Origin: Lytechinus pictus | Taxonomy: Eukaryota | NCBI RefSeq assembly: GCF_037042905.1 | Contig: NC_087246.1 | Location: 66,650,001-66,714,000 of the forward strand | Length of the DNA: 64,000 bases | Direction: 5' to 3' | Part shown: positions 2,020 to 59,749 of the stretch, one piece after another | Layout: each line of letters opens with the position of its first letter | How positions within the stretch are numbered: the stretch's first letter is position 1 | Translations under genes and position numbers: made by a program | The notes under the pieces: generated by a model | The model's database searches: none | The model's input: only the letters and a program-made list of their open reading frames with translations | Told to the model about the DNA's origin: nothing

Positions 2020-4829
2020 TTAAAAAGTGATTTGAATCTCTGTGCCTTTTGTTCTATTCTTCTTAGACTGGCTTTGTATATATTTAATCAAAATAAATGG
2101 TAGCTATTAACGTTTCTACTGCTATCCGCAAATGTGTTTAGATTTTATGTTTCAGTGGTTTTCCTCTTTATTATTTGGAATTGATGTTGCATTTTGAACA
2201 AACCAAATTTATAGTTATTTCCTAGATAGTGGTAAACATAATTTTGTTTTTTTAGATAACAAACTATAAAATTTTATGACTAATTCTCTTGACCCATCAA
2301 ATTGCACCATCTCAGTCGTGTTCATAAGAATTTTTTATTGTAACTTTTCATGTTGACATTTAGTTTTTTTGTTTTTTTTAAACAGGGCTGTGTTAAATTA
2401 AACGGATATGACAGAAGTTGTTATAATTATTGAAAAAAAATTGTTGAATTTTGATTACTTTGGCCTAACTGGAAAAAAAACTACTAGTATAGGTATACAT
2501 ATATTGTTGGCCTTGATTAATTGAAGGATTTAATAAGTCTACTGGTCTTTCAAATAATTGAATTAATATATGATTAATAATTTTTGCTTATCATTTTCCA
2601 ACGTAGAATGAGAAGTTTCATATTATATAATGGTTGGTTGAAAAGGAAGTTTTTAAAAGACACTTCAGGTGGTATGTGATTGCTATCAGGCAAGGATTTC
2701 TTCAGATTAGACACAAAAGTTTTTAGAGGCTGACTATTATACAAAAACAACATGGCCCCTGAAATGGGATTTTGTCAACTAGTATTCTGGCTGGATCTGT
2801 TCCTGATCGATTTTTGTTTTTTAAAGTGTTATTAACATACATTTGCTTTGATAAAGTGTTGGATTACCAGGCTTGCACAAGAGATCATCACGAGGATGAT
2901 GCTACGGCCTCATTCAAAATTAAAGTTGTTTTTTTTTCCTAAAGCTTTGGTGAATTGTTCAATGATAACATTGAGCTATCATCCAATATTCCAGTCTTAC
3001 AAAAGTATTTGGTTTTCTTTCACTGATTCTTTGTGAACCATTGAAATTGTGCATTGGATGATCCTAATCACCATCTTTCAGTAATGCTTTAATTTTTCTT
3101 TTCGAAAGGCTTGTTGAAAATTCTGACATAAATGCAGTGATTATATACATGTATCAGAAAATTAAAGACAGATATTATTTTCAAAATGTTCAGCCCATTC
3201 CCATGCTTGAGAAATGAATTCATACCAAAACCAAGAAATACACAATTAGGGATCCTGTCCAAACAATTTTGTTCAGTGAAATCTCAAAATCATCCACTAA
3301 AACATGTTTTCTTTTTTTAACTTATATCATCCACACATGAGATCAAATTGGAATAGTGACCAGTAATTTTGACGAGATTTACCAAACGGAAAAGAGGCTT
3401 TAATCAAAATCCAATATTTTTAATACAAGATCTGTCTATTCCATTGTTTTCTTTTATCCATGTCAGTTAAATTTTGTACAGGACAACACTTTTTTTCCTT
3501 CATACTCTCATTAATCTGTTGCATTGACTGGACATATTTAAGTAAAATCTGCTACTTTTTTTTATTTGATTTTTTTTTTAATGTAACCTTAATGCCATTG
3601 TGTGTTTTTTTGTTTCTACTTTATACTGTATGATTAGCTTTGTTTTTTTTTCTGTTGTTTTATGCTAAAATACTAAAATAGTGTTGCACATACATGTATA
3701 TTCATCTCATTACATGAAGAGAAGTTATCCTTCTTGCCTTAGTACATGTTTTCCTCCTTTTGTTTGGTGTTTCCAATACCTTTTTTTCCAAATAATGAAA
3801 ACTAGCAAGGGTGAATAAGGGTGATACATGAAATTTAACTTGTCGTTGTTAATACAAGAATGAAGCATGACTAGTAGAAATAGTTCATGTTCATTTAGAT
3901 AATCATTTGATAGGAAAAATAGAGCAAATATTATTTTCATGATTTTAATTCTATTCAAGATACCGGCTCATCAGATAATATGGTTTAAATGATAATACAC
4001 TGTACTGGTAATTGATACTTGATATCCCCTTACTGCCCGAAAAAAGAAAAATCAAACTTGAATTAATAGATATTGCTTTCTGGAGAGATGTCACTGTATC
4101 TCTTTTAGATATATTTATCACATTTAAGAGACTAATGTCAAAATATGAACATCCAAGGAACAAAAAAAAATTGAAAAACTACATGTATAGCGACTGCTCA
4201 TGTATTTCCTTTTGTAGTGTGTTTAACATTCCAGAGTGATTTGAAAAGACTTCATGTACTTGTGTAGAACAGCTTATTGTTACTGTTAAATTCAATGTTA
4301 TTCATGGGAAATGTACATATGCAGGAATTTTCTTTTGCCTTCTGTAGTTGTATTACATTAGTTTTGGAATGTAAATTTTCTTTTGTACCCTGCTACATGT
4401 ACGTACATAATTGTGTATCTTAACATTTGAGTTGCATACCGTACTATTGTTAGAGAGCTGATTTGATTGGCTTGGACAAGATGTTATGGATTTTTTTTGG
4501 ACCAGTTGTTTGGTTTGATCGAACAAAAACATATATTTCATGTGAAATTAAAGTCTTGAGGAGCAACTTATCTATTGTTCAAATTGAAATTTTGTGTTTT
4601 AGCTTGATTAAGTTGAAATCTTACTATTATCATCAGCAATATCATCATAATTATAATAGTATGAATTATGAAAGTAATAATGGTATCCATTATGGTATTT
4701 TTTTTTAAAATAATTAATTTACTTACTTTATTCATCAAAAATTGACCACTCAACCTTTTAATATGTCACTGATAATTCAGTTTACATATTGAATATTTTG
4801 TTTTCATGATTGGGAGCTTATTCAATTAA

Positions 4830-5580
4830 AGGGAGTACTTCAGGCTGAATATGATTTGAACAAATAGAGTAAAATCAGACAAGCACTAAATATTTGATTA
4901 AAATTTGGACAATGAATTAAAAAAGTTGTGATATTTCAATTTTTTTCATTATTTTGATAAACAGGTCTTCATGAATATGCAATGAGTGAGCTGATAATTC
5001 TTTTGTATTTTACTATAGGAAATGATGTTTATTCAAATTTTGTCCTCCAAGATTACATACATGTAACAATAGTATTGTCTTCAGATTTACTTGTCAAGAT
5101 AATTATAATATGCTGATTTGATTCATTACGAGGGCGACATGGTTTAACACACTCATCTATGAAAATGTTAATAGTGATTTCTTGAATAGCATAAAAAAAG
5201 GAGAGTCAGGCCATGACATCAGCTCACCTACTGCATATTCGAGATTGCAATTGGCAAATTACTTTTTCACAAAATATTGCAGAACTTTCAAATTCTATAA
5301 CTCAATATGCAACATTTATATAGCGCTTAATACAAATGTTTCTAAGCGATTTAACTATTACTTCGACTTTAGCATGGCTATCCTGATCGTAAACTCAAGC
5401 ATTCAAGGAATTCCTACCTACCGGTACACATTTACTACACCTATTCAAAGTGTAAACTGGATGGTTGAGTGGTCAATTTTTGATGAATAAAATAAGTAAT
5501 CAGATTTTGATGAAAAATTTGTTCATTGAATTTTACTCCATTTAGATACAGTATAATTATTTTCACCCTGAAGTACCCCT
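4830..5580. mobile_element. Non-autonomous TTAA-targeting DNA transposon (Kolobok-like MITE)
   Basis: TTAA|AGGGAGTACTTCAGGCTGAA at left and TTCACCCTGAAGTACCCCT|TTAT at right form terminal inverted repeats. Confidence 0.65.
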
Positions 5581-34200: not shown

Positions 34201-37200
34201 GTAAAGAAAAAAAACTTGCTACACTGGAGAAATTTATGTAGTTTATACAATTCATGCAAAAATTCATTACATATTACAATATATCAGGAAAATTGATCCC
34301 TGTATGTAGTAATTCTTAGTCCAGCTTACATAATAATTGAATTGTAAAATTTGCCACTAAATTCAGTGCTTTGTTACACAGTGCTTAGTATTGATGTCAT
34401 TGACCTTAATTTTTCAATAAATCCTAATAATCAATTGTATGATGAGTCGCTAAGCACTGTGTTAAGGCCCCCGGGACCAAGTTTATAATCATGTGTCTTG
34501 TTTTTTTTCTTTAGATCGATTTTGGTTCTGTCGTCTTTCACCTAATCATAAGATGATACATCATGGTGATATAGAAACTCACCAATCACCACCAAGCTAC
34601 GAAGCTCTCACCAACAAGAGTAAGAATTCTACAGAGATCATCAAACAAATATATTCCTTCCTACTAAAACAATGCCTCAAACTAAACTCAAAGCATTTTT
34701 TTTCAAAATGGCATTGTACAGGCGATTTCTTGTCTTCGTATCACTACTGTCATTAAAGATTTAGAAAGGAATCATAACATTAATTCTTCTTGAAAATTAT
34801 ATTATCTTTTATAGTACTGCCACAAAGAATTTTCTTGTTATGTTTATGTATATGAATATTGACTTTGTATTATAGCTTTACTTAGGACATTGATCTGATT
34901 TAATTAAATTTGTATGATCTGTAGATTATTATATGAAATTTATCAATTTGTATGATTTATGAGTAAATCATAAAAGTTATCCCTTCAAAGCATTTTGGTT
35001 CAAACTGCCTGGTAGTTGTGACTGTCACTATGTATTAATGAAAGGCTGTTCCACTTGTGCTACTTTGTTATTTTTTAAATGTTGAGGCCTTGATCCCAGC
35101 CATGGCATAATTTCCTTCGGCAAGAAATTTATCCACATTGTGCTGCACTCAACCCAGGTGAGGTGAATGGGTACCTGGCAGGAATTTATTCTTTGAAATG
35201 CATGTGCGCTGTAATCTTAGTAATTACGGCTGCCAAGCTACAGCTGGGGTAATAATATCCAAGTCCTTTGGAAGCGCATAGAGACATTATTCATAATTGT
35301 GATATGCGCTATACAAGAACTGTGTATTATTATTGTTATTATAATTACAGTTAATAGATATTGCATTTTATGTAATTTTAAAGTTAGCTATTGTACAAAT
35401 TGTTTTCCAAAAATAAATTTACTGCACTATAGTAAGTAGAGTAAGTTCTGCCTATTTTGGTTGTTGTTGATAAAATGGAAATCTCTTGGATGGGGTGTTA
35501 TTTATAGTTATCACATTAATGAGACAATGTTTAAACAAGATTTTATCTCTTTATTTTTTCAGTTGCTGTGGCTGATATTCAGGAGATCCAGACAGGGAAG
35601 GACTGCCAGCATGTCCGCAATGTCAGGGTATGTGAGCATTGCCTGAGGGAGTCCTGACATTGATCAGGATTCATGATCAGATCATTATGTTTGGATTACT
35701 CTGTTTTATGTTAATACAATAGAGTATTGGTTTAAACAGTGAATTCCAGAATACAAAATATTGCTGCCTAGGTCCATGAGATCCCATTAGGGAAAAACTT
35801 TTATCTTTTCTGCTATGTTAGAATAATTTAATGTTGTCAGAGAAGGATTCTTGACATATTCTACCCCATGTTCCATCTTTAATTCTTAGACAATACAATA
35901 AAGTTGGAGTACTAGTTGCATTTTCTTGATATATGATATGCAGATGAAAGGATTGTCAGCATGCCCGCATTTTCAGAGTAACATGAGTGATTGCCAGAGG
36001 AATTCCTGAAATGCGGTCATGCTATGATGTTGTAATAATCAGTCAGATTTTGTTTGTTTTGCCTGATTATCCAATGAGATTTTATTGAATTATTCACTAT
36101 TTCATCATTGATCTTATAGTCTACAAAATCAAATCCCAGTGATGAAGGAAGCTGTCATGTATCTAAGACATTTTATAAAACAAAGTTTTGAAGATTGATG
36201 CCAGTTGTGACAATTTTGAAATGAGTTCAAACAGAATCCAATAAAATGACCACCTTAAAGGGGAATCCAGCCTTGGCCATAAATTGTTGCGTTGGGAAGG
36301 AGAAAAATAAATAAATCAGAATGGTGAAAGTTTGAAAGAAATCAGACAAGCAATAAGAAAGTTATAGCTGCTTTAAAATTGAGATCACTAATACTATGTA
36401 GATTTCAAATTGGCAACTGGGTAATAAATTATGACAAGGGGCAAGGACAACTTTCCCATAGGCCATGTACTTTATTATCAGGGATTTGTGGTTTTCTCCT
36501 AAGTACCCATTCCCCTGGGGCAGTAATCTAGATATAACCCAGGTAGTACATTGTTTTATGTCCTCATGAAAGAAAAATATAATTTGAAATAAAACTTTTG
36601 GGAAAAATGACATTTTAGCCATAATATGTATTAGAGTACATGGAAGAGTAGTCCTTGCCTTACATCACTATGACATCCCATATGCGGCCAATTTGAAGTC
36701 TCCATGGGTATAGTGATTACCAATATTTACAACTTTTAAAAATTCATAACTTTCTTGTTGTTTGTAAAATATTGTTCAAACTTTCACCTATCAACTTGTC
36801 TGATTTTTCTTTTCCTTATAAAAACAAGTTTTTATTTGGGTTGGATTCCCCTTTAATGTTTATATGTATGAAATCAGTGTTTACTGTAACTACATTTATC
36901 TTTAAGCCTTAATTAACTCAATTTTGTCCAAGCTTCTAGAGCAGAGTCTGTTATATCAATATTATTGATATTATTTGTAGGTTGATGGTAGCTTAGCCTT
37001 CTCCATCTTACATCAGCTAGACCATCGTCTAGATTTCATCGCCAGGTCACAAGAGATGGTGAGTACGGAATGCCTTCCATAATTGCACCGTCAGAAGCAC
37101 ATGTTAACACATTGCCAGTTCATCCTCGGCAAAGCCCATTTAGCCTCCACATAACCAGATCATCTTCACCATCATCATTACTAGCACTAATCATCACCAC

Positions 37201-38209
37201 CATTCTACCCATGTAATGTGAAATAAAAAATTAGCCTTGGCGAAAGGATAAATGATCATTTTTAGGCGATTTGGATGTAGCTTATATTTCTGAAGTGGAG
37301 CATTGAGCATTTATATTCATATTACTGAAGAAATTATAGTTTGTCTTATCCATTAAAAGCAATATGATATTATTTTCTTAATATTCCACAACGAAAAATG
37401 ATATATTGTCAAAAGTGACATGAGTGGCCTGTATTCTGGAAAGAGATTTCAATTGTATGATGGTACAAAACCATGGACTATGCAGATTTCTCATATTATT
37501 CATTCAAAAGCACATATTTGTAATTGGACCTTTCTAAGTGTACGCAAATAGGCATAATCATGTACACAATCAGCATGGTCCATGGTTTTGTACCATGGAA
37601 CAAAAAAAACTTCTTCCGAGAATACAGGCCATGATGTATATAAAAATGACACCTAAAGTGAAATGTTGTACAGTCCAAGAAGTTGCTCCAGGGTTTGCAT
37701 TCCTGTTTCCTTGTATTGAGTTCATAGATGATATGTGCTTGTACTGAAGTTTTCTTATTGAGAGTAGTACTAGTGCAATACACTTTCATTTTGCTCACAT
37801 ATAGAAGTTATGATTACATTATATGTGACTCTATAGATAAATAAGTGTAACTTGATAGATCAGCAAAAAGGCAGACCTCCTTGTCTTTGATGGACAAATC
37901 TATAATTTATCACACGATTCACTTTTCATCAATCAGATAGCAAAACTTTAAGTGCAGATTGTAGAATGAAACCTTGATGATGAGTATTCCACTGCTCTTC
38001 CCACACAGTTTGACATGTGGACGGACGGTCTTAACGTGCTCCTAGGTAAACCCATGCAGAGCAAGCAGAAGGAGGCTGACCTGGAAGCACTTCTTGGGAT
38101 GGAGATGAAGATTCGTCTCTTGGACATGGTTAACATCCCCATCCCCACCACGGCTCCTGTCATACCACCCCCACCCACGGATTATAACTTCTATTATGAC
38201 CAGATATGA
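19161..38209 (+). CDS. ELMO: Engulfment and cell motility protein (ELMO/CED-12), whole spliced gene span: 19 coding exons, 2172 nt, 723 aa
   Basis: Hand-spliced exons give one open frame with GT-AG introns. N-terminal RBD-like region, ARM region, ELMO domain ([34 protein letters not shown]), PH domain ([21 protein letters not shown]) and C-terminal PxxP tail. Confidence 0.95.
19933..20100 (+). CDS. ELMO: ELMO exon 2 ([12 protein letters not shown]...[22 protein letters not shown])
   Basis: AG/GT boundaries, phase 0/0, strong ELMO similarity. Confidence 0.92.
20673..20842 (+). CDS. ELMO: ELMO exon 3 ([11 protein letters not shown]...[25 protein letters not shown])
   Basis: AG/GT boundaries, phase 0/2, D.TFAQ.FI motif. 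Confidence 0.92.
21780..21950 (-). mobile_element. SINE fragment
   Basis: Reverse-complement core ccatttacttcacctgggtcgagtgcagcacaatgtgga plus a B-box remnant gggatttgaacc. Confidence 0.6.
22133..22232 (+). CDS. ELMO: ELMO exon 4 ([33 protein letters not shown])
   Basis: AG/GT, phase 2/0, F.EL.DH.I.SWD motif. Confidence 0.93.
22829..22917 (+). CDS. ELMO: ELMO exon 5 ([29 protein letters not shown])
   Basis: AG/GT, phase 0/2, IASFVN and ILES..LN motifs. Confidence 0.92.
23421..23489 (+). CDS. ELMO: ELMO exon 6 ([23 protein letters not shown])
   Basis: AG/GT, phase 2/2. Confidence 0.88.
24135..24213 (+). CDS. ELMO: ELMO exon 7 ([26 protein letters not shown])
   Basis: AG/GT, phase 2/0, NAL.LKAP motif. 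Confidence 0.9.
24750..25115 (+). mobile_element. Degenerate L2/CR1-like LINE 3' end
   Basis: gcagctgccaggacttggaatgccatccctcttccaataaga (WN.LP..IR-like) followed by agcgcctctaaatattc and an (ATT)n tail. Confidence 0.45.
25680..25730 (+). CDS. ELMO: ELMO exon 8 ([17 protein letters not shown])
   Basis: tctttacag acceptor, GAG|GTGAGA donor, phase 0/0, fills the expected gap in the protein. Confidence 0.82.
26147..26266 (+). CDS. ELMO: ELMO exon 9 ([40 protein letters not shown])
   Basis: AG/GT, phase 0/0, [15 protein letters not shown] motif. Confidence 0.93.
26493..26533 (-). ncRNA. Minimal hammerhead ribozyme motif (inverted copy)
   Basis: Exact reverse complement of 27194-27234. Confidence 0.65.
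27194..27234 (+). ncRNA. Minimal type I hammerhead ribozyme motif in the PLE pseudo-LTR
   Basis: TCAC-TTGATAA-A-GAGTTGC-AGCG-GCACTC-GAAAGCTC-GTGA: stem I TCAC/GTGA, core UUGAnAA, stem II, GAAA, palindromic AGCU stem III, UC cleavage site; ~30 nt downstream of TATAAATA. Confidence 0.7.
27410..28235 (-). mobile_element. L2-clade LINE 3' fragment interrupted by a SINE
   Basis: [21 protein letters not shown] (~28160-28225) resembles the L2 RT C-terminal L..LHWLPV..RI.FK; WNNLP-like segment at ~27630-27650; (TTA)n tail into which the PLE inserted. Confidence 0.7.
27782..28106 (-). mobile_element. Near full-length tRNA-derived SINE
   Basis: tRNA-like head with B box (ttcgaatcccc on -), central cacccaggtattaaatgggtacc domain, aagcgcttagagacg...agcgctatataa tail and (TTA)n end. 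Confidence 0.8.
28454..28555 (+). CDS. ELMO: ELMO exon 10 ([34 protein letters not shown])
   Basis: AG/GT, phase 0/0, ELR..AF and DYK.LGF motifs. Confidence 0.92.
29098..29202 (+). CDS. ELMO: ELMO exon 11 ([35 protein letters not shown])
   Basis: AG/GT, phase 0/0, P..DF...PPG.LAL motif. Confidence 0.93.
30032..30140 (+). CDS. ELMO: ELMO exon 12 ([36 protein letters not shown])
   Basis: AG/GT, phase 0/1, highly conserved ELMO-domain segment. Confidence 0.95.
30285..30772. mobile_element. Kolobok-like non-autonomous element
   Basis: TTAA|AGGGGAAGTTTACCCTGA at left and TCAGGGTGAACTTCCCCT|TTGA at right. Confidence 0.7.
31258..31394 (+). CDS. ELMO: ELMO exon 13 ([46 protein letters not shown])
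   Basis: AG/GT, phase 1/0, conserved motifs. Confidence 0.95.
31445..31710 (+). mobile_element. SINE (degenerate)
   Basis: B-box-like ggttcgactc, core tgtgctgcactcaacccaggtga...aatgggtac, aagcgctatataaat tail. Confidence 0.6.
32097..32171 (+). pseudogene. Decayed duplicate of the 5' half of ELMO exon 14
   Basis: aagGTAATGAATGTTGTCCAGGACCAGATAAAGAGAGCCCTGAAGGAGCAAAAAAAGCCAAACACCTAG matches 32385-32465 with a 6-nt deletion and ATG changed to TAG. Confidence 0.75.
32388..32569 (+). CDS. ELMO: ELMO exon 14 ([14 protein letters not shown]...[14 protein letters not shown]...QARPV)
   Basis: AG/GT, phase 0/2, Y.EILK.R..ER motif. Confidence 0.93.
33377..33492 (+). CDS. ELMO: ELMO exon 15 ([38 protein letters not shown])
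   Basis: AG/GT, phase 2/1, ELI.QQRL..LVEGT.F motif. Confidence 0.95.
33503..33703. mobile_element. Palindromic MITE immediately after exon 15
   Basis: ccccattcaacaga...tgaaagacc is inverted against ggtctttcagtgg...tctgtggaatgggg. Confidence 0.5.
34515..34619 (+). CDS. ELMO: ELMO exon 16 ([35 protein letters not shown])
   Basis: AG/GT, phase 1/1, PH-domain [10 protein letters not shown] motif. Confidence 0.95.
35085..35340 (+). mobile_element. SINE
   Basis: tttccttcggcaagaaatttatccacattgtgctgcactcaacccaggtgaggtgaatgggtacc...aagcgcatagagac...gcgctatacaag with (TTA)n tail. Confidence 0.75.
35563..35627 (+). CDS. ELMO: ELMO exon 17 ([22 protein letters not shown])
   Basis: AG/GT, phase 1/0, VADI....TGKDC.H motif. 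Confidence 0.92.
36259..36852. mobile_element. Kolobok-like non-autonomous element
   Basis: TTAA|AGGGGAATCCAGCC ... GGTTGGATTCCCCT|TTAA with perfect TTAA flanks. Confidence 0.75.
36981..37058 (+). CDS. ELMO: ELMO exon 18 ([26 protein letters not shown])
   Basis: AG/GT, phase 0/0, LAFSIL and L.FIA motifs. Confidence 0.92.
37426..37631. mobile_element. Palindromic MITE
   Basis: TGGCCTGTATTC...tggtacaaaaccatggactatgc inverted against gcatggtccatggttttgtacca...GAATACAGGCCA. Confidence 0.6.
38009..38209 (+). CDS. ELMO: ELMO exon 19, last coding exon ([13 protein letters not shown]...[24 protein letters not shown])
   Basis: Acceptor cacacag; WTDGLN.LLG, ME.K.RLLD and the proline-rich tail; TGA at 38207-38209. 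Confidence 0.95.
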   Translation, partial: FDMWTDGLNVLLGKPMQSKQKEADLEALLGMEMKIRLLDMVNIPIPTTAPVIPPPPTDYNFYYDQI

Positions 38210-39737
38210 TTCACCCATCCCCCACCGTAGCCCCCGTCATACCACCCCCACCCACGGATTACATCTTCTATTATGACCCGATATGAATCACCCGTCATAC
38301 CACCCCCACCCACGGATTACAACTTCAATTTTGACCAAATATGACTCACACTTCCACCCTTCCCTTACCGTAGCCCCCGTCATACCACCCCCACCCACGG
38401 ATTATAACTTCTATTATGACTAGATATGACTCACCCTTCCACCCATCCCCCACCTTAGTCCCCGTCACACCACCCCCACCCACAGATTGCAACTTCTATT
38501 ATGACCAGATATGAATCACCCATCCCCCACCGTAGCCCCCGTCATACCACCCCCACCCACGGATTATAACTTCTATTATGACCAGATATGAATCACCCAT
38601 CCCCCACCGTAGCCCCCGTCATACCACCCCCACCCACGGATTATAACTTCTATTATGACCAGATATGAATCACCCATCTCCCACCGTAGCCCCCGTCATA
38701 CCACCCCCACCCACGGATTATAACTTCTATTATGACCAGATATGAATCACCCATCTCCCACCGTAGCCCCCGTCATACCACCCCCACCCACGGATTATAA
38801 CTTCTATTATGACCAGATATGAATCACCCATCTCCCACCGTAGCCCCCGTCATACCACCCCCACCCACGGATTATAACTTCTATTATGACCAGATATGAA
38901 TCACCCATCCCCCACCGTAGCCCCCGTCATACCACCCCCACCCACGGATTACATCTTCTATTATGACCCGATATGAATCACCCGTCATACCACCCCCACC
39001 CACGGATTACAACTTCAATTTTGACCAAATATGACTCACACTTCCACCCTTCCCTTACCGTAGCCCCCGTCATACCACCCCCACCCACGGATTATAACTT
39101 CTATTATGACTAGATATGACTCACCCTTCCACCCATCCCCCACCTTAGTCCCCGTCACACCACCCCCACCCACGGATTGCAACTTCTATTATGACCAGAT
39201 ATGAATCACCCATCCCCCACCGTAGCCCCCGTCATACCACCCCCACCCACAGATTGCAACTTCTATTATGACCAGATATGAATCACCCATCCCCCACCGT
39301 AGCCCCCGTCATACCACCCCCACCCACGGATTATAACTTCTATTATGACCAGATATGAATCACCCATCCCCCACCGTAGCCCCCGTCATACCACCCCCAC
39401 CCACGGATTATAACTTCTATTATGACCAGATATGAATCACCCATCTCCCACCGTAGCCCCCGTCATACCACCCCCACCCACGGATTATAACTTCTATTAT
39501 GACCAGATATGAATCACCCATCTCCCACCGTAGCCCCCGTCATACCACCCCCACCCACGGATTACAACTTCTATTATGACCAGATATGAATCACCCATCT
39601 CCCACCGTAGCCCCCGTCATACCACCCCCACCCACGGATTATAACTTCTATTATGACCAGATATGAATCACCCATCTCCCACCGTAGCCCCCGTCATACC
39701 ACCCCCACCCACGGATTACAACTTCTATTATGACCAG
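38138..39737 (+). repeat. 77-bp minisatellite (~21 copies) derived from the ELMO C-terminal coding sequence and stop codon
   Basis: Unit CCCATCCCCCACCGTAGCCCCCGTCATACCACCCCCACCCACGGATTATAACTTCTATTATGACCAGATATGAATCA; ATATGA recurs at 38204, 38281, 38339, 38424, 38509, 38586 and onward to 39661. Confidence 0.95.
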
Positions 39738-39954
39738 GAGGGTACCAGCCAGTACTGACTAAATTGTCAGCTTTGGCAATTTCAGTGAGATCCTTGGTTT
39801 TGAATGGCTGAGAAACTTTGATCTCTGATTGTAACTATGACAATTTAATCAGTGCTGACAACTTCGATGAAACACTCCCAAGATATGAATCATTCAGCCT
39901 TATTCACTTTCTAATGGATATCAATAAATGCCACACCAGGATCTAGCCAGTATA

Positions 39955-40202
39955 CAGTGCGTTCCACAAAAAACGAAACCGAGATTTATCATAACTGATA
40001 CAGCCCGCCAAATGACTTTTTGGTATCCTTTCTTCAAATTGTTTTTGCTCACTCATGCGTGAATGGGGAATAATCTCAGTAATATCAAATGAAAGAGGAG
40101 ATTCTAAGTTTTACATTGGTAGGTCATTTGTCTATTGTATTTGTGATTAAATTATGATAAATCATCGCTTAATCTCGGTTTCGTTTTTTCTGGGACGCAC
40201 TG
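39955..40202. mobile_element. Tc1/mariner-type MITE
   Basis: TA|CAGTGCGTTCCACAAAAAACGAAACCGAGATT ... AATCTCGGTTTCGTTTTTTCTGGGACGCACTG|TA. Confidence 0.8.
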
Positions 40203-40584
40203 TATAGTCGACGTGTATCTGTCAAGCAGGTTATTATTGAACCATATTTATGGATATCAAAAAATAGAATTCTTTTCATCAAGAAATAAGATATTGCCTG
40301 TGTTCAGAATCTTCCCTGTGTATCCCTCAGTGAAAATATGATTGCAATATATATGTCAGCATAGATAGCCCATAACAGATAGAACAACTATCCCTAAACC
40401 AGTTATTTAGTATTGGTATTGATCTTCCACATATGATAATTTGATGTTGGGAGTAACCCGATGAGTAAGTGGATGATGGAATACAGTAATTATGCAATTC
40501 GAATGGATCATGCAGAACACGGAATACGGTAGTATTTTAGTGTAGTTTTCATTTTCAAAGCTGAGGAGACCATGTGCGGTGATT

Positions 40585-41553
40585 TTTTGTCTCACCTGCA
40601 TAGCAGAGTGAGACTATAGGCGCCGCTTTTCCGACGGCGGCGGCGACGGCGACGGCGGCGGCGGCGTCAACACCAAATCTTAACCTGAGGTTAAGTTTTT
40701 GAAATGACAGCATAACTTAGAAAGTATATGGACCTAGTTCATGAAACTTGGCCATAAGATTAATCAAGTATTACTGAACATCCTGCCTGAGTTTCATGTC
40801 ACATGACCAAGGTCAAAGGTCATTTAGGGTCAATGAACTTAGACCATGTTGGGGGAATCAACATCAAAATCTTAACCTAAGGTTAAGTTTTTGAAATGTC
40901 ATCATAACTTAGAAAATATATGGACCTAGTTCATGAAACTTATACATAAGGTTAATCAAGTATCACTGAACATCCTGCATGAGTTTCACATCACATGACC
41001 AAGGTCAAAGGTCATTTAGGGTCAATAAACTTTGGCCGAATTGGGGGTATCTGTTGAATTACCATCATAACTTTGAAAGTTTATGGATCTGATTCATGAA
41101 ACTTGGACATAATAGTAATCAAGTATTACTGAACATCCTGTGCAAGTTTCAGGTCACATGATCAAGGTCAAAGGTCATTTAGGGTCAATGAACTTTGGCC
41201 AAATTTGGGTATTTGTTGAATTACAGCCATAAATTTCAAAGTGTGTTGGTCTAGTTCATAAAACTTGGACATAATAGTAATCAAGTATCACTGAACATCC
41301 TGTGCGAGTTTCAGGTCACATGATCAAGGTCAAAGGTCATGTAAGGTCAAAGAACTTTGGCCACGTTGGGGGTATTTGTTGAATTGCCATCATATCTCTA
41401 TAAGTGTATTGGTCTAGTTCATAAAACGTGGAAATAAGAGTAACCAAGTATCACTGAACATCTTGTGCGAGTTATAGTAGTTTTCAAAATCAGCACTGCT
41501 GCTATATTGAATCGCGTGATGCAGGTGAGACGGCCAGAGGCATTCCACTTGTT
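40585..41553 (+). mobile_element. Helentron-associated interspersed element (HINE/DINE-1/Tsp-like) with internal ~160-190-bp tandem repeats
   Basis: Starts in a T-run; subterminal inverted repeat GTCTCACCTGCA/TGCAGGTGAGAC; (GGC/GAC)n microsatellite; five satellite-like units (aaacttgg...caagtattactgaacatcctg...aaggtcaaaggtcat); ends ccacttgttt. Confidence 0.75.
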
Positions 41554-42737
41554 TAGAAAAGAAGCTATTTCTCAACTCAACCTCATTGATGACCTGTGCT
41601 ATTATGGATAATCATGTATTATACCTACCATCTATAATAAAGTTATAGTGCATGATTTAAATTGTAACAAACTTTAGTCAGGTTACATATGACAGCACAT
41701 ATTTTTGTATTTGATATATTTTGATATGTACATTGTAGATAAAATGTAAGCATGTTTGTTAACTTATTACAGGGTTATTGTCTGAATACATCAGTTAATA
41801 TACTCTGGTTAAAGGATGGTTATCAACTTTTTATACTTTGTTACCAACAATTGTTGTACGATTATTATTGAGAAAAAAGTAGAATTGTTTGATATTATTG
41901 TTACTGGTATACATTACGATTATTCAGTTTGTTTACTTGTATCAGAAATGTTATTTATTTGATTAGGTATCTTGTACACTTCAATCTTTTTTATTATATA
42001 TTTCAAGACTTTATATTCCATCAGAAGGGGAGTTCAAAATGTACATTAACCCGACTGATTCATGCATTATAAATAAAAATATGCCATTATCAATTGTGTT
42101 TTGTAATCTAGGAGGAGGAAAAACAATGTTAACTCTTTTATTTTAATTTATTATCAGTGTAAGATCACTCTCTTTTCCAATTTTTTAATCATTTTTTTTT
42201 CATCGTACTTGTGCATGGACCAAGATGTATTTTGTATGCAGAATTTTCACTGTAGCAGACCTACACAACATACTGCAGGTTTAAGCACCTATAGAGAACA
42301 GTAAAATTGCAATATTCTAGTACATGTCTAGAATATTAATATTTTGTAGATTATATTATTTATGTATCATATTACATACCTACAATGTATAATTTTCCCA
42401 ATATGCTAGACATGTGCATTATCTCCAGTATATTCTAGTTCTTTATCTTTTGTCATTAAAGACAGCTGTCATTTTATATGTACACATAACACACTTGCGC
42501 ACCCTCCATTCCACATATGAGTATAAGAGGAAGGGGACTTTGTATTTATTTCATGATAATGGTTATCTTAGTGTGTTAAGAAAGCCAATAACAGTTCCTT
42601 TTGCGAAAATCTTCAATTCTGAATTTTTTTTTTTTGCAATATGGTCCAGCCAGTCCCCCCCCCCCGAAAAAAATACATAGGGGCAATTGGCACCCCCTTC
42701 CCTGTTCAAAATACATGTTCCCCATGTGTGACATCTT

Positions 42738-49852: not shown

Positions 49853-51928
49853 TTAAATGTGAAGTAAAGCAAATCTTTTATTTGATCCCCAGTCTCGGTC
49901 AGAGTCTATATCTTCAGTGGCTTGATTGCTGCTCTTTGGTGTTGCTCCTTGCTGCTGTATTCCCTTCTGCTGCTGACCTTGACCGGGCTTGGACTTCCTG
50001 GAGGACTGTTTCGATTGTTGACCATCACTAGCAGACATCTTCTGGCCAACCTTCCTAGCATTTGAAGTGATGAACTTATGCATTGAAACAAAGAGCTGAG
50101 ATGCTATTGGTGTGTCTTTGAAGAACATGACCACTGCGTACCTATTGGGTGGTACTGAATCATACCAAAGTGTCATGTACAAATTGTGCATTAACAGGCC
50201 ATTGAAGAGGATAGAAGCATCACGACAGTCTGGCAAGGGACTCTGAAGCAGTTCATTGAAGCAGATGCCATAGTATAGGCACTGCTGCCACTGAGAAAAG
50301 CTTTGAGAAATAACAGGATCAGGTTTTCTCTTTCTTAGCCGTCTTAGAGAATGGCTGAAGTTGGTGTACATAATCTTGCATTCACTCTTCAGATCCCTTG
50401 ATGGAGCAGAAGCTGCACATTGCCCTTGTAGTTCAGATGGTCCTCCATCTTTGCACATTCTGTTTTGTCTTTGGGTGTAGAGATAGACCCATCCGACAAG
50501 CAAAGAATTGATATGAAACTCATTGTAGTGGGAGTGTTCTGAGTTCATCCAGTATAACATCACAAGAATAGCAAGCTGGAAGGCAGCAGGGAACGTCAGA
50601 AGTTCCATGTGTGATGTAAGATTTGGTGCAAGAGCCTGAAGCAATAGTTTCTGCTTGTCTGTCTCATGGAGTGATGGAATTGCAGCCAAAGTGGGAAGCT
50701 CCCCATACCCCTCTAACAAGTCTAATGGGGAAACCTTCTTTCTCTTTAACCCACCTCCATCTCTAATATACACATGACATTCACTTGCTCCTTCATTTCC
50801 TTGCCTCCTATCAGCAAGGGCAATCCCAGACATCACTGAAAATAAAGCCTCTGATGGAAGCCAGACACTAGGCCGTCTTAGATCTTCCAATTGGACAGCT
50901 GAAAAACAGTATCCCATGCTCCTGATATTGATTAGCAAGCTGTCGATAGACCCTTCCTGATGAGCAGCAGCCACCCACACAGGTATCCCGACTGCAGTAC
51001 ACAGTTGAGACTTTGCTTGGAAATCTCTTGGATGTCTTTGTTTACCAAGGTAAGACACAAGGTTAGAGGAATCGTCCCTCGTCTGATACATTCCAATTGA
51101 AGCTTGTAAACAGGGCTCCAGGTCCTCATTTGGAAAACACTTCAGCACATCTTTCAAAATATTGGTAAATGACCTGTGTTCACTGAGCCAGCAAAGGAGA
51201 TCCTTCAACTTCTTTTGCCGCTTACTGCCGGTGCTGTCATACTTTCCGTACACCTCGCTTGAAAGAAATGGATCCAGTGAGTCAGGATTAATATAGTCAT
51301 TGCCAGCCAGTGTGGCGAAGAGAGGCAGCGACTCTTTTTTGACACGGAAGAAATTACAGAAATTGTTGACTTGATAGATGCGACTTCGAATATAGAATTT
51401 TCCTTTTGACTTCTGAACAACTGGCCACTTCAGCAATGACAAAGGAAGGTAGCCGCCAACAATATCCATTACCATAAAGTCACTATCTTCTCCTACCACT
51501 GGACACTGCCAATGATTGGCCAGCATGGCTATCTCTTTGTCTCCTTCAAACTCACTGATGGCAAATCCAATGTTCATCTCGGTAAGAACCTGCTTCACTA
51601 TGTATATATCTAGTGGAGACAAAAACACAATGTCTTCTCCATCGAACGCATCTTTGATTGATGAGATTGAGTCCCGAAGACGGTTTACCATGGTGTCGTG
51701 CTTTTTACCATCAAGGTCAAAGCATCCATCAAAGACCACATAGGGGGTACAGTTGCACTTAAGGAGACATTGGAAGAAGTCTCGGATCTCACTTTGAAGC
51801 TCAGCGTCAAGCAAATAATATACAAGTCCAAAACCATCTATAACAATCTTGGTATCCTGGAGGCAGAAGTCTTTGTAAAGTACTCTAGAATATGTGTTTA
51901 CAAGTGAAGTCAAGCCCCTGATACCCAT
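49853..51928 (-). CDS. ASTE1: Asteroid homolog 1-like protein (XPG/PIN-like nuclease fold), paralog A, 691 aa, single coding exon
   Basis: MGIRGLT start, IVIDG, YVVFDG, EGDKEIA, DSDF, AGNDY, FSQWQQC and C-terminal NKRFALL are asteroid-family features; 5'UTR acceptor at ~51995. Confidence 0.88.
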   Translation of the reverse strand: MGIRGLTSLVNTYSRVLYKDFCLQDTKIVIDGFGLVYYLLDAELQSEIRDFFQCLLKCNCTPYVVFDGCFDLDGKKHDTMVNRLRDSISSIKDAFDGEDIVFLSPLDIYIVKQVLTEMNIGFAISEFEGDKEIAMLANHWQCPVVGEDSDFMVMDIVGGYLPLSLLKWPVVQKSKGKFYIRSRIYQVNNFCNFFRVKKESLPLFATLAGNDYINPDSLDPFLSSEVYGKYDSTGSKRQKKLKDLLCWLSEHRSFTNILKDVLKCFPNEDLEPCLQASIGMYQTRDDSSNLVSYLGKQRHPRDFQAKSQLCTAVGIPVWVAAAHQEGSIDSLLINIRSMGYCFSAVQLEDLRRPSVWLPSEALFSVMSGIALADRRQGNEGASECHVYIRDGGGLKRKKVSPLDLLEGYGELPTLAAIPSLHETDKQKLLLQALAPNLTSHMELLTFPAAFQLAILVMLYWMNSEHSHYNEFHINSLLVGWVYLYTQRQNRMCKDGGPSELQGQCAASAPSRDLKSECKIMYTNFSHSLRRLRKRKPDPVISQSFSQWQQCLYYGICFNELLQSPLPDCRDASILFNGLLMHNLYMTLWYDSVPPNRYAVVMFFKDTPIASQLFVSMHKFITSNARKVGQKMSASDGQQSKQSSRKSKPGQGQQQKGIQQQGATPKSSNQATEDIDSDRDWGSNKRFALLHI

Positions 51929-55047: not shown

Positions 55048-57192
55048 TTACTGAAGTAAAGCAAATCTATTATTTGCTCCCCAGTCTTGGTCAGAGTCTG
55101 AATCTTCACTGGCTTGATTGCTGCTTTTTGACATTGCTCTTTGCTGCTGTCTTCCCTTCTGCTGCTGACCTTGACGGGATTTAGACTTCCTGGAGGACTG
55201 TTTGGATTGTTGACCATCAGATGATTTAGCAGACTTCTTCTGGCCAACCTTCCTAGCATTGGAAGTGAGGAACTCATGCATTGAAACAAAGAGCTGAGAT
55301 GCTATTGGTGTGTCTTTGAAGAACATGGCAACTGCCCACCTATGGAGGGGTTCCCTACCTGAAGCATCCCGAAGTGTCATGTACAAGCTGTGCATTAACA
55401 GGCCATTGAAGAGGATAGAAGCATCAGGACAGTCTGGCAAGGGACTCTGAAGCAGTTCATTGAAGCAGATGCCATAGACAAGGCACTGCTGCCACTGAGA
55501 GAAGCTGTGAGAAATAACAGGATCAGGTTTTCTCTTTCTTAACCTTTCTTGATGGTGGCTGAAGTTGGTGTGCATAATCTTGCATTCACTCTTCAGATCC
55601 CCTGGTGGAGCAGAGGCTGCACATTGCCCTTGTAATTCAGATGGTCCTCCATCTTTGCACATTCTGTTTTGTCTTTGGGTGTAGAGATAGACCCATCCGA
55701 CAAGCAAAGAATTAATATGAAGATCGTTGTAGTGGGAGTGTTTTGAGTTCATCCAGTACAGCATCACAAGAAGGGCAAGCTGGAAGTCCACAGGAAATGA
55801 CACAAGGTCCATGTGTGTTGTAAGATTCGGTGCAAGAACCTGACGCAAAAGTTTCTGCTTGTCTGTCTCTGGGAGTGATGGAATCATCGCCAAAGTTGGA
55901 AGCTTCCCATATCCTTCCAACAGTTGCAATGGTGAAACCTTCTTTCTTTGGAATCCATCACCATTTCTAATATACACATGACAGGTTTCTGCTCCTTTAC
56001 CCTTATTACCTTGTAGCCTTCTCGCAAAAACAATACCAGACAACACTGAAAACAGAATCTCTGACGGTAGCCATGCACTGGGCTGTCTTAGATTTTCCAC
56101 TTGAATACTGGAGAAACAGTACCTCTTACTCAAGACATTGATCAGTAGGTTCCCAAATAAACCTGCCTGGTGAGCTATGGCTACCCATACTGGTGTCCCT
56201 ATGACAGAACACAGTTGAGACATTGATGGGAAGTCTTTTGAAAGTCCTTGTCCCTCAAAGTAGGGTAGAAGGTTGCTGGAGTCAAGTCTTGTCTGATACA
56301 TTTCCATGGAAGCTTCAAATGAGGGTTCCAGTTCTTTCTTATTTGTGAGGGATTTCCACACATCTTTCAAAGCAGTAGCACTTGATCTCCGTTCACTTAG
56401 CCAGTAGAGAAGGTGTTCCAATTGTGTCTGTCGTTTATTGCCACTGCCACTGCCACTGTATTTTCCATACACCTGGCTTGAAAGAAATGAATTCAATGAC
56501 ATAGGATCAACATAGTCATTGCCAGCCAGTGTGGCGAAGAGAGGCAGCAATTCTTTTTTTACATGGAAGAAGTTACAAAAGGCATTGACTTGATAGATCT
56601 GACCCACAATGAAACACTTCCCTCTTCGGGACCTCTGAACAGTTTTCCACTTTAGCAGTGTCAAAGGAAGGTAGCCTCCAATGATATCCATCACCAAGAA
56701 GTCACTGTCTTTTCCAAGGACTGGACAACGCCAATAGTTGGCCAGGATAGCTATCTCTCTGTCCGCCTCAAACTGACTGAAGGCAAATCCCACGTTCAGT
56801 TCTGCAAGAACCTGCTTCATAACACAAAGACTCAGAGGAGGCATCAAAAGACCATTCCCTCCATGAATAAGCTCTCTAGCCATCCTGATCTTATCCTTGA
56901 ACCTGTCCAGCATAGTACCATGTTTCTTATCATCAAGGTCAAAACTGCCATCAAAGACCACATACGGGGTACAGTTGCACTTGAGAAGGTTCGTGAAGAA
57001 GTACTGGATCTTGGAGCGAAGCAGTTCATACTCCCCACCATGTGACATACGGTCTGCATGTTGAATTTGAGAAATAAGGTACCACAGGAGTCCAAATCCA
57101 TCAATGACAAGTTTAGTATCCTGGAGGACGATGTCTTTGAAGAGCTTCTTGGAGTGATTCTCCGCCAAAGTAGTGAGACCCCTGATACCCAT
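55048..57192 (-). CDS. ASTE1: Asteroid homolog 1-like protein, paralog B, 714 aa, single coding exon
   Basis: MGIRGLT, LVIDG, HGGEY, YVVFDG, EADREIA, DSDF, AGNDY and NNRFALL motifs; 5'UTR acceptor at ~57255. Confidence 0.9.
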   Translation of the reverse strand: MGIRGLTTLAENHSKKLFKDIVLQDTKLVIDGFGLLWYLISQIQHADRMSHGGEYELLRSKIQYFFTNLLKCNCTPYVVFDGSFDLDDKKHGTMLDRFKDKIRMARELIHGGNGLLMPPLSLCVMKQVLAELNVGFAFSQFEADREIAILANYWRCPVLGKDSDFLVMDIIGGYLPLTLLKWKTVQRSRRGKCFIVGQIYQVNAFCNFFHVKKELLPLFATLAGNDYVDPMSLNSFLSSQVYGKYSGSGSGNKRQTQLEHLLYWLSERRSSATALKDVWKSLTNKKELEPSFEASMEMYQTRLDSSNLLPYFEGQGLSKDFPSMSQLCSVIGTPVWVAIAHQAGLFGNLLINVLSKRYCFSSIQVENLRQPSAWLPSEILFSVLSGIVFARRLQGNKGKGAETCHVYIRNGDGFQRKKVSPLQLLEGYGKLPTLAMIPSLPETDKQKLLRQVLAPNLTTHMDLVSFPVDFQLALLVMLYWMNSKHSHYNDLHINSLLVGWVYLYTQRQNRMCKDGGPSELQGQCAASAPPGDLKSECKIMHTNFSHHQERLRKRKPDPVISHSFSQWQQCLVYGICFNELLQSPLPDCPDASILFNGLLMHSLYMTLRDASGREPLHRWAVAMFFKDTPIASQLFVSMHEFLTSNARKVGQKKSAKSSDGQQSKQSSRKSKSRQGQQQKGRQQQRAMSKSSNQASEDSDSDQDWGANNRFALLQ

Positions 57193-58320: not shown

Positions 58321-59749
58321 AAACAAGTGGAGCGCCTCTGGCAGTCTCACCTGCATCACATGATTCAATATAGCAGCAGTGCTGACTTTCAAAAATTACT
58401 ATAAAATAATTATTCACAAAAAAACACCATTCATATAATGATACAATACTATGTTCACTGACCTTAAATTACCTTTGACTTTGGTCATGTGACCTGAAAC
58501 TCACATGAGATGTTCAATGATACTTGATTCCTCTATGTCCAAGTTTTATGAACTAGATCCATACACTTTCAGAGTTATGATGGTTATTCAACAAATACCC
58601 CCAACATGGCCAAAGTCCACTGACCTTTGACCTTGGTCATGTGACCTGAAACTATCACAGGATGTTCAGTGATACTTGATTACTCTTATGTCCAAGTTGT
58701 ATGAACTAGACCAATAAACTTTCAAAGTTATAATGGTAATTCAACAATTACCCCCAACTTGGCCAAAGTTCATTGACCTCAAATGACATTTGAACTTGAT
58801 CATGTGACCTGAAACTCGCACAGGATGTGTAGTGATACTTGATTACTCTTATGTCTAAGTTTCATGAATCAGATCCATAAACTTTTAAAGTTATGATGGT
58901 AATTCAACAAATACCCCCAATTTGGCCAAAGTTCATTGACCCTAAATGACCTTCGACCTTGGTCATGTGCCTCAAAACTCAGGCAGGATGTTTAGTAATA
59001 CTTGATTAATCTTATGTCCAAGTTTCATGAACTAGGTCCATATATTTTCTAAGTTATGATGACATTTCAAAAACTTAAAGAGAAATTCCAGTAGTTGCAG
59101 TAAACACTGATTTCATGAGAAAGTCTGTAAAACCAGGCTTAATTGTCAGTATATCATCGAGGATCTAGATCTGGTACAGTTACATAAACTGAACTTTGTG
59201 AAATCTTGAAATCTACGCTGAATAATGTTCAGACTGAACTTCCCCAACACAGATAAGCGCACGTGGGACAGTGTATAATTATTGCTTTGAGCGTCGGGCC
59301 CGACGCTCGACCCGAATCCTGTGCTTATTTGCTGATTTCTCAGCAATTACACAATTTCTTCCAGAATCCTTTGGCACATGTGTTTTATTCATACAAACAG
59401 ACACTTTGGTGGTCATTTCATTGGATTCTGTACGAACTCATTTTGATATCGTTACCAAAACTAGCATTTACCTTTAACCTTAGGTTAAGATTTTGATGTT
59501 GATTCCCCCAACATGGTCTAAGTTCATTGACCCTAAATGACCTTTGACCTTGGTCATGTGCCTCAAAACTCAGGCAGGATGTTTAGTAATACTTGATCAA
59601 CCTTATGGTCAAGTTTCCTGAACGAAGTCCATATACTTTCTAAGTTATGCTGTCATTTCAAAAACTTAACCTTCGGTTAAGATTTGGTGTTGACGCCGCC
59701 GGAAAAGCGGCGCCTATAGTCTCACTCTGCTTCGCAGGCGAGACAAAAA
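58321..59749 (-). mobile_element. Second HINE copy, same family as 40585-41553, inverted
   Basis: Reverse complement matches both termini (aaacaagtgg...gtctcacctgca and gcggcgcctatagtctcactctgc...agacaaaaa) and the internal satellite units. Confidence 0.78.
59079..59473. mobile_element. TTAA-targeting (Kolobok-like) element nested in the HINE
   Basis: Interrupts caaaaacTTAAccttaggttaag, which is continuous in the other copy. TTAA duplicated at 59075-59078 and 59474-59477; imperfect TIR AGAGAAATTCCAGT/ACTAGCATTTACCT. Confidence 0.8.

Follow-up and report, generated by a model that had tools for sequence, protein, structure and literature searches.

How does a gene come to carry some twenty copies of its own coding tail behind its stop codon, and do the open reading frames (ORFs) that arise in this way serve any purpose? 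The question is raised by the 3′ end of the ELMO gene of Lytechinus pictus, which lies on the plus strand of a 64-kb stretch of contig NC_087246.1 (assembly GCF_037042905.1, positions 66,650,001 to 66,714,000). We refer to this whole stretch as the window; positions below are those of the window and, unless stated otherwise, of its plus strand. An initial annotation, produced by a model from the letters alone, had described a chain of mini-ORFs here and proposed that they could yield free ELMO-tail peptides, in a dose set by copy number, or act as regulatory downstream ORFs (dORFs). Our analysis shows that the repeats form a minisatellite transcribed in the ELMO 3′ untranslated region (3′UTR) and present in a sister species. 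With a probability of roughly 0.8, we read this array as near-neutral and fast-evolving, its ORF chain being a by-product of duplication and its ORFs not being maintained by selection.

The exons of ELMO run from ~19185 to a terminal coding exon at 38009–38210, which holds 66 codons and a TGA at 38208–38210 and encodes the end of the PH region followed by the PxxP/YNFYYD tail. Sea-cucumber ELMO1 (P0002) aligned by tblastn at 70% over 38009–38200, with the upstream exons from 19185 also aligned, and the 66-residue translation of the terminal exon matched 265 ELMO-type proteins at E values up to 0.001, with a best identity of 69–70%. A word-based protein search with the same 66 residues as query gave no match, and a search with the C-terminal region of the sea-cucumber protein returned only echinoderms and one arachnid. 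Homologues terminate one or two residues past a YY[D/E] motif, which makes the stop at 38208–38210 the protein's normal end. The final codons read Gln-Ile-stop, ATA TGA at 38205–38210, with an ATG at 38206 overlapping the stop. PxxP, the aromatic-acidic end and the usual stop position are all present, as in the C-terminal tails of the ELMO/CED-12 family, and the exon is single-copy in the 812-Mb assembly.

No other tandem repeat in the window is nearly as strong as the array that Tandem Repeats Finder reported at 38138–39737, with a period of 77, 20.9 copies, a score of 2226 and 84% matches. Its sense strand is C-rich, with 42% C and 10% G. The start of the array falls inside the last ELMO exon: the first unit, which we call the genic copy (38138–38214, taking the array start given by the program), is the working coding tail and comprises the final 22 codons with their stop, plus the bases that open the 3′UTR, while 20 further units follow the stop. 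Set against the array consensus, the last 47 nt of the genic copy are identical, whereas its first 22 nt carry five differences and one indel (Fisher p = 0.0006). Across the whole assembly the repeat unit is confined to this array, with no dispersed copies. Head-to-tail units, a single locus and a position downstream of the stop within the transcript are features of a 3′UTR minisatellite. In the reference genome the last unit is truncated after GACCAG and is followed by a unique 3′UTR tail (39738–39950, a single match in the genome) with an AATAAA at 39923–39928, the only canonical poly(A) signal from the stop to 40000; none lies within the array. An exact 12-nt copy of a unit junction (AGATATGAATCA) stands at 39881–39892, 145 nt past the array in the otherwise unique tail, and scored 24 where the maximum in 500 shuffles was 23. 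An insertion may have separated this copy from the ancestral end of the array, of which it would then be a remnant.

When units are delimited by cutting at each ATATGA, the genic copy is followed by u1 (77 bp), u2–u4, u5–u9 (77 bp each), u10–u13 and u14–u20 (77 bp each). Units u2 (58 bp), u3 and u4 (85 bp each), together at 38283–38510, are broken in frame, and u3 contains an in-frame TAG. Units u10–u13 are repeats of u1–u4, and the copies of the broken units, u11–u13, occupy 38973–39200, bringing the frame-broken units to 6 of 20. The repetition is that of a higher-order block: block 1 (u1–u9, 38206–38895) and its recent duplicate, block 2 (u10–u18, 38896–39585), differ at seven positions in 690 nt and are thus 99.0% identical. 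In essence, then, the reference array consists of a nine-unit block present twice, and many of its intact ORFs are very recent copies of one another.

Thirteen ORFs of 26 amino acids (aa) start at 38206, 38511–38896 and 39201–39586 in 77-bp steps, the stop of each overlapping the next start, and a fourteenth (39663–39758, 31 aa) extends into the unique tail. They include a first run of six intact ATGA-chained 26-aa ORFs (38511–38976) and a second run in which six such ORFs are followed by the final 31-aa one (39201–39758). ATGA stop/start overlaps are found at 14 junctions, and the encoded peptides carry PxxP and the YNFYYD tail; the 26-aa product contains neither Lys nor Arg and is set apart from the C-terminal peptide of ELMO itself by its N-terminus. 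Two properties make the chain automatic: the duplicated segment includes ATATGA, which gives every junction an ATG overlapping a TGA, and the length of the unit is, by chance, 2 mod 3. In its anatomy the initial annotation has held up well: the ELMO 3′ end is repeated with the 77-bp period that it gave, the gene ends ATA TGA with an ATG overlapping the stop, the AATAAA that it put at ~39923 is the sole canonical one before 40000, and its approximately 13 intact units, read as ATGA-chained 26-aa ORFs, are exactly 13, at the starts that it gave. Readthrough of the ELMO stop codon into the array was considered and rejected as unproductive, the frame reaching a TAG after six codons. On the minus strand of the array no ORF exceeds 48 aa, and the nearest long minus-strand ORFs lie ~10 kb downstream.

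Whether these units are carried in the mRNA was read from contigs of sequence runs, compared with the reference over 37700–38345, a span reaching from the end of the intron through the exon into the first units; the contig variant table lists only differences far from contig ends. In a same-species RNA run (X1) intron depth is zero and exon depth is 92, and the exon contig runs on into the upstream exon, which identifies the run as spliced RNA. RNA contigs of two species begin at 38008/9, with no depth in the intron, and are joined there to the upstream exon. In X1 the unit junctions have a summed depth of 2900–5400 against 92 in the exon, and the u1–u2 and u2–u3 junctions are present at about exon depth, including the joint 38345>38212. 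One X1 contig passes from a unit (…GACCAG) into the unique tail with one substitution relative to the reference, this array-to-tail junction appearing as a loose contig end, and words of the tail (39730–39950) are present at 0.89–1.00 in four runs of the same RNA study (P1). Spliced contigs that carry unit junctions, together with the array-to-tail junction, place the array within the ELMO 3′UTR. The array, whose presence in the mRNA had been suggested only as a possibility, is thus transcribed as part of the ELMO mRNA 3′UTR according to RNA contigs, which do not show strand, level or transcript ends. We also considered whether Asn-type and TCT-type units might be private to the reference, there being no T>A row at 38210. 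This was rejected, as two high-depth junction contigs, with one and two unlisted differences, fit them.

A sister species is represented by two runs, one of spliced RNA (X9) and one of DNA (X20). Both match the exon perfectly except at one site, which is also seen in X1. In the intron, X20 shows three substitutions and two indels in ~80 nt, indicating that the sister species has diverged by a few percent. At 38032 the T of the reference (CTT, Leu) is probably a private synonymous variant, since G (CTG, Leu) stands there in the same-species RNA and in both runs of the sister species. Junction depth against exon depth in the sister species is 1073 vs 83 in the RNA and 175 vs 31 in the DNA, where several different contigs, each at the depth of a single copy, make up the junction total. 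The sister species has a multi-copy, transcribed array, and since its junctions are multi-copy the array predates the split of the two species. Junction depth in the DNA is ~5.6x single-copy, compared with 20 units in the reference, contig depth not being a copy number. The array is probably shorter in the sister species, and copy number seems to differ several-fold between the two.

The far end of the array has changed as well. In both sister-species runs a contig exits the array directly after ATATGAATCA (seen at 38290) into a different 3′ flank. A 30-mer of this flank has no match in the reference genome at up to three mismatches, and a weak local alignment at 40218–40246 was discarded as not significant, being equalled by 34 of 500 shuffles. 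Conversely, the tail words of the reference genome are present in no run of the sister species. The two species therefore have different ELMO 3′UTR ends, and the arrays differ both in unit variants and in 3′ flank. The sister-species array ends in the same phase as that in which the genic copy opens the array, which fits the simple duplication of one whole 77-bp segment.

If the mini-ORFs were maintained for their peptides, their variants should bear the mark of purifying selection. Among intact units of the reference there are seven variant sites, three synonymous and four non-synonymous, where the neutral expectation is a synonymous share of 0.23–0.31 (p = 0.2–0.37), and the variation looks neutral. 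The frame-broken block u2–u4 was itself duplicated within the 690-bp block. In the sister species every listed unit variant changes the amino acid (P>R, V>L, A>V, P>S, P>L, P>L, P>S), and units also carry a 1-nt deletion in a C-run at 27% (RNA) and 42% (DNA) of depth; some of these variants probably sit in the terminal unit of that array. By contrast, alleles of the sister-species genic copy, taken from two contigs that start in unique exon, show four synonymous changes and one V>I relative to the reference. From these variants the real ELMO tail appears to be constrained and the repeats do not. The comparison of synonymous and non-synonymous change, which the initial annotation had named as a check, thus gave 3:4 in the reference and non-synonymous or frameshifting units in the sister species, and an intact ORF under purifying selection among copies and relatives, as expected of a micropeptide, was not found.

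From the anatomy, we infer that a 77-bp segment, which took in the final 22 codons through the Ile-stop ATATGA plus a few bases of 3′UTR, was tandemly duplicated. The array would then have grown and been reshuffled by slippage and unequal exchange, the latest step being the 690-bp duplication, for which the 99.0% identity of the blocks points to a recent unequal exchange. The ELMO protein still ends at its normal position, and the array is carried in the mRNA. The mini-ORFs are probably translated little or not at all, and an effect of the array, if there is any, is more likely to be exerted through the mRNA, as a long, unstructured, C-rich 3′UTR, than through peptides.

Several observations weigh against so neutral a picture. 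The tail frame is kept open in 14 of the 20 units, and the tail of every unit sits within some ATG-started ORF. All three of the common variants (TCC/TCT, TAT/TAC, ACG/ACA) are synonymous, as had been stated at the outset together with the remark that some others are not, which here are the four non-synonymous sites. The tests for selection, resting on small variant counts and on units that are recent copies of one another, are of little power. Translation within the 3′UTRs of cellular mRNAs is known (PMC10275272, PMC7544200), and the persistence of the array in two species, carried in mRNA, leaves room for some function of the RNA or of the ORFs.

The alternative that survives best, though we consider it unlikely, is that the array is a functional RNA-level element of the 3′UTR, either with C-tracts that recruit poly(C)-binding KH proteins or with dORFs that tune the stability or translation of ELMO mRNA, so that array length would behave as a quantitative allele. 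The composition of the sense strand agrees with the first version, with 104 runs of at least three C, ~5 per unit, in an array that is predicted to be unstructured and is present in the mRNA of two species; poly(C)-binding proteins recognise C-rich RNA of this kind (PMC1885661, PMC3367169). The second draws on dORFs, which can be translated and can raise the output of the main ORF (PMC7544200; Wu et al. 2020, as cited in PMC10275272). However, the C-richness is fully accounted for by proline codons and, being inherited from them, makes a selective explanation unnecessary. Comparison of the two species also speaks against it, as they seem to differ several-fold in copy number and do not share a 3′ flank.

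A stronger claim, that these stop/start-overlapped ORFs form a heritable array of variable copy number which at least two species have maintained and which is translated, yielding free ELMO-tail PxxP peptides or acting as dORFs that tune ELMO output and hence DOCK-Rac signalling, is very unlikely in our judgement. Its most explicit form, the one closest to the initial annotation, holds that ribosomes reinitiate serially from the ELMO stop along the chain of AUG codons, releasing free tail peptides with PxxP, which would compete for the DOCK SH3 domain in a dose that copy number determines. This we regard as still harder to believe. It has in its favour the AUGA at 14 junctions, peptides with PxxP and YNFYYD, the presence of the array in the mRNA, the engagement of the DOCK SH3 domain by the ELMO PxxP segment (PMC7351999) and the precedent of AUGA/UAAUG overlaps, which support reinitiation in caliciviruses and influenza B (PMC10275272). 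In those viruses, reinitiation after a long ORF needs a structured, rRNA-complementary element and yet reaches only 3–20% (PMC10275272). The UGGGA core with complementarity to 18S rRNA is absent from the array as TGGGA, which occurs once only, at 38095 in the exon, 111 nt before the first ATGA. A three-unit fold has −18 kcal/mol and is no better than shuffled sequence (z = +1.0 against shuffles), and no Rfam family matches 37000–41600 at E values up to 1. Thus, of a cassette of the TURBS type (termination upstream ribosome-binding site), the stop/start overlap is present whereas the UGGGA-type motif and the structured element are both absent, and the caveat of the initial annotation that no TURBS-like element was identified has been borne out.

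The geometry of the chain is no more favourable to this mechanism. In the reference it breaks after u1: a path that goes from the ELMO stop always to the ATG that follows takes the u1 ORF, then a 46-aa ORF and then a 10-aa ORF, after which it picks up the unit's other ATG and keeps to a 22-aa frame across u5–u9, missing the first intact run and regaining the tail frame only at the tenth step. Even along an intact chain, the summed yield at a per-junction efficiency e would be ~e/(1−e), so that copies past the first few would add almost nothing and copy number would not set the peptide dose. The unit variants bear no mark of purifying selection, and frameshifted units are found in both species. 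The ELMO-DOCK interface is formed mainly by a helical bundle and the PH domain, the PxxP-SH3 contact being a second segment (PMC7351999); a free tail peptide, having neither helical bundle nor PH domain, would therefore be a weak competitor. Of the model put forward in the initial annotation, the anatomy, the ATGA chain, the PxxP tail and the presence in mRNA stand, but the functional part, that is, free peptides, a dose set by copy number and regulatory dORFs, is unsupported.

It is scarcely credible that misassembly produced the copy number or the 690-bp duplication and that the array is really much shorter: the blocks are 99% identical and the u1–u2 and u2–u3 junctions stand at ~1x exon depth in X1 rather than 2x, but unit-junction words reach ~30x exon depth in one RNA run, the depths of two junction contigs (394 and 470) match the 6:7 ratio of TCC to TCT units under the contig-to-unit assignment that we infer, and the array is far shorter than modern long reads, in a chromosome-scale assembly of 368 contigs.

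As a near-neutral minisatellite, the array has familiar relatives. The 3′UTR of SLC6A3 carries a 40-bp variable number tandem repeat (VNTR). Intragenic and 3′UTR minisatellite VNTRs have been surveyed genome-wide in humans (PMC8096271, PMC11701250). Like such 3′UTR VNTRs, the ELMO array occupies a single locus and consists of units of some tens of bp arranged head to tail, transcribed in a 3′UTR, with the variant units and higher-order duplications that are typical of unequal exchange, and its copy number apparently differs between close relatives. Unlike them, it has as its unit the coding tail of the gene itself, including the stop. The protein still takes its working end from the first unit, and the intact units behind it are each a self-contained ATG-to-TGA frame. 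The array is thus an ordinary kind of object, a transcribed 3′UTR minisatellite, of unusual origin; our literature search found no described minisatellite born from a coding tail and its stop codon.

The resemblance to other systems is more partial. With the TURBS-dependent reinitiation of caliciviruses and influenza B (PMC10275272, PMC2793014, PMC3035654) the array shares the AUGA overlap after a long ORF, but its units carry neither a UGGGA-type motif nor flanking structure, its downstream ORFs are not conserved, and its chain is serial and interrupted. The array also recalls cellular dORFs (PMC7544200; Wu et al. 2020, cited through PMC10275272), which are likewise short, start with AUG and lie in a 3′UTR, whereas those of the ELMO array are generated by repetition, polymorphic, partly broken and only putative. 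Finally, the genic copy agrees with the ELMO/CED-12 tail (PMC7351999) in its PxxP, its Y-x-F-x-Y-D/E and its usual stop, and the units repeat the motif; they differ in following the stop and in having neither the PH domain nor the helices of the main DOCK interface.

The locus illustrates that a duplication across a stop codon can instantly yield many AUG-to-stop frames that encode a known binding motif. Such an array could serve as raw material for de novo micropeptides, and it offers a potential natural construct for measuring AUGA reinitiation independently of a viral tethering element. Should the length of the array influence ELMO mRNA, it would amount to a quantitative allele of a gene for engulfment and cell motility.

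Other repeated elements lie near the array. At 39951–40206, ~25 nt past the ELMO AATAAA, there is a 256-bp element with terminal inverted repeats that resembles a miniature inverted-repeat transposable element; it has >2,500 candidate copies in the genome at 90–97% identity, often as inverted pairs ~600 bp apart. The last ELMO intron holds a 605-bp high-copy element with inverted ends (36255–36858), and its >2,300 candidate copies share 96–98% identity, indicating very recent amplification. Two tandem arrays with a 163-bp (and 192-bp) unit, at 40667–41473 and 58466–59061, lie in opposite orientation ~17 kb apart and flank two XPG_N-like genes; the arrays look like a dispersed satellite or a transposon-borne repeat. 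The genes themselves are two tandem paralogous ORFs of 691 and 714 aa on the minus strand (49853–51928 and 55048–57192), apparently intronless and both starting MGIRGLT. By their predicted products they resemble Asteroid/XPG-like nucleases, and in the second the Pfam XPG N-terminal domain was matched at E = 9e-5, with 23.3 bits against a cut-off of 22.

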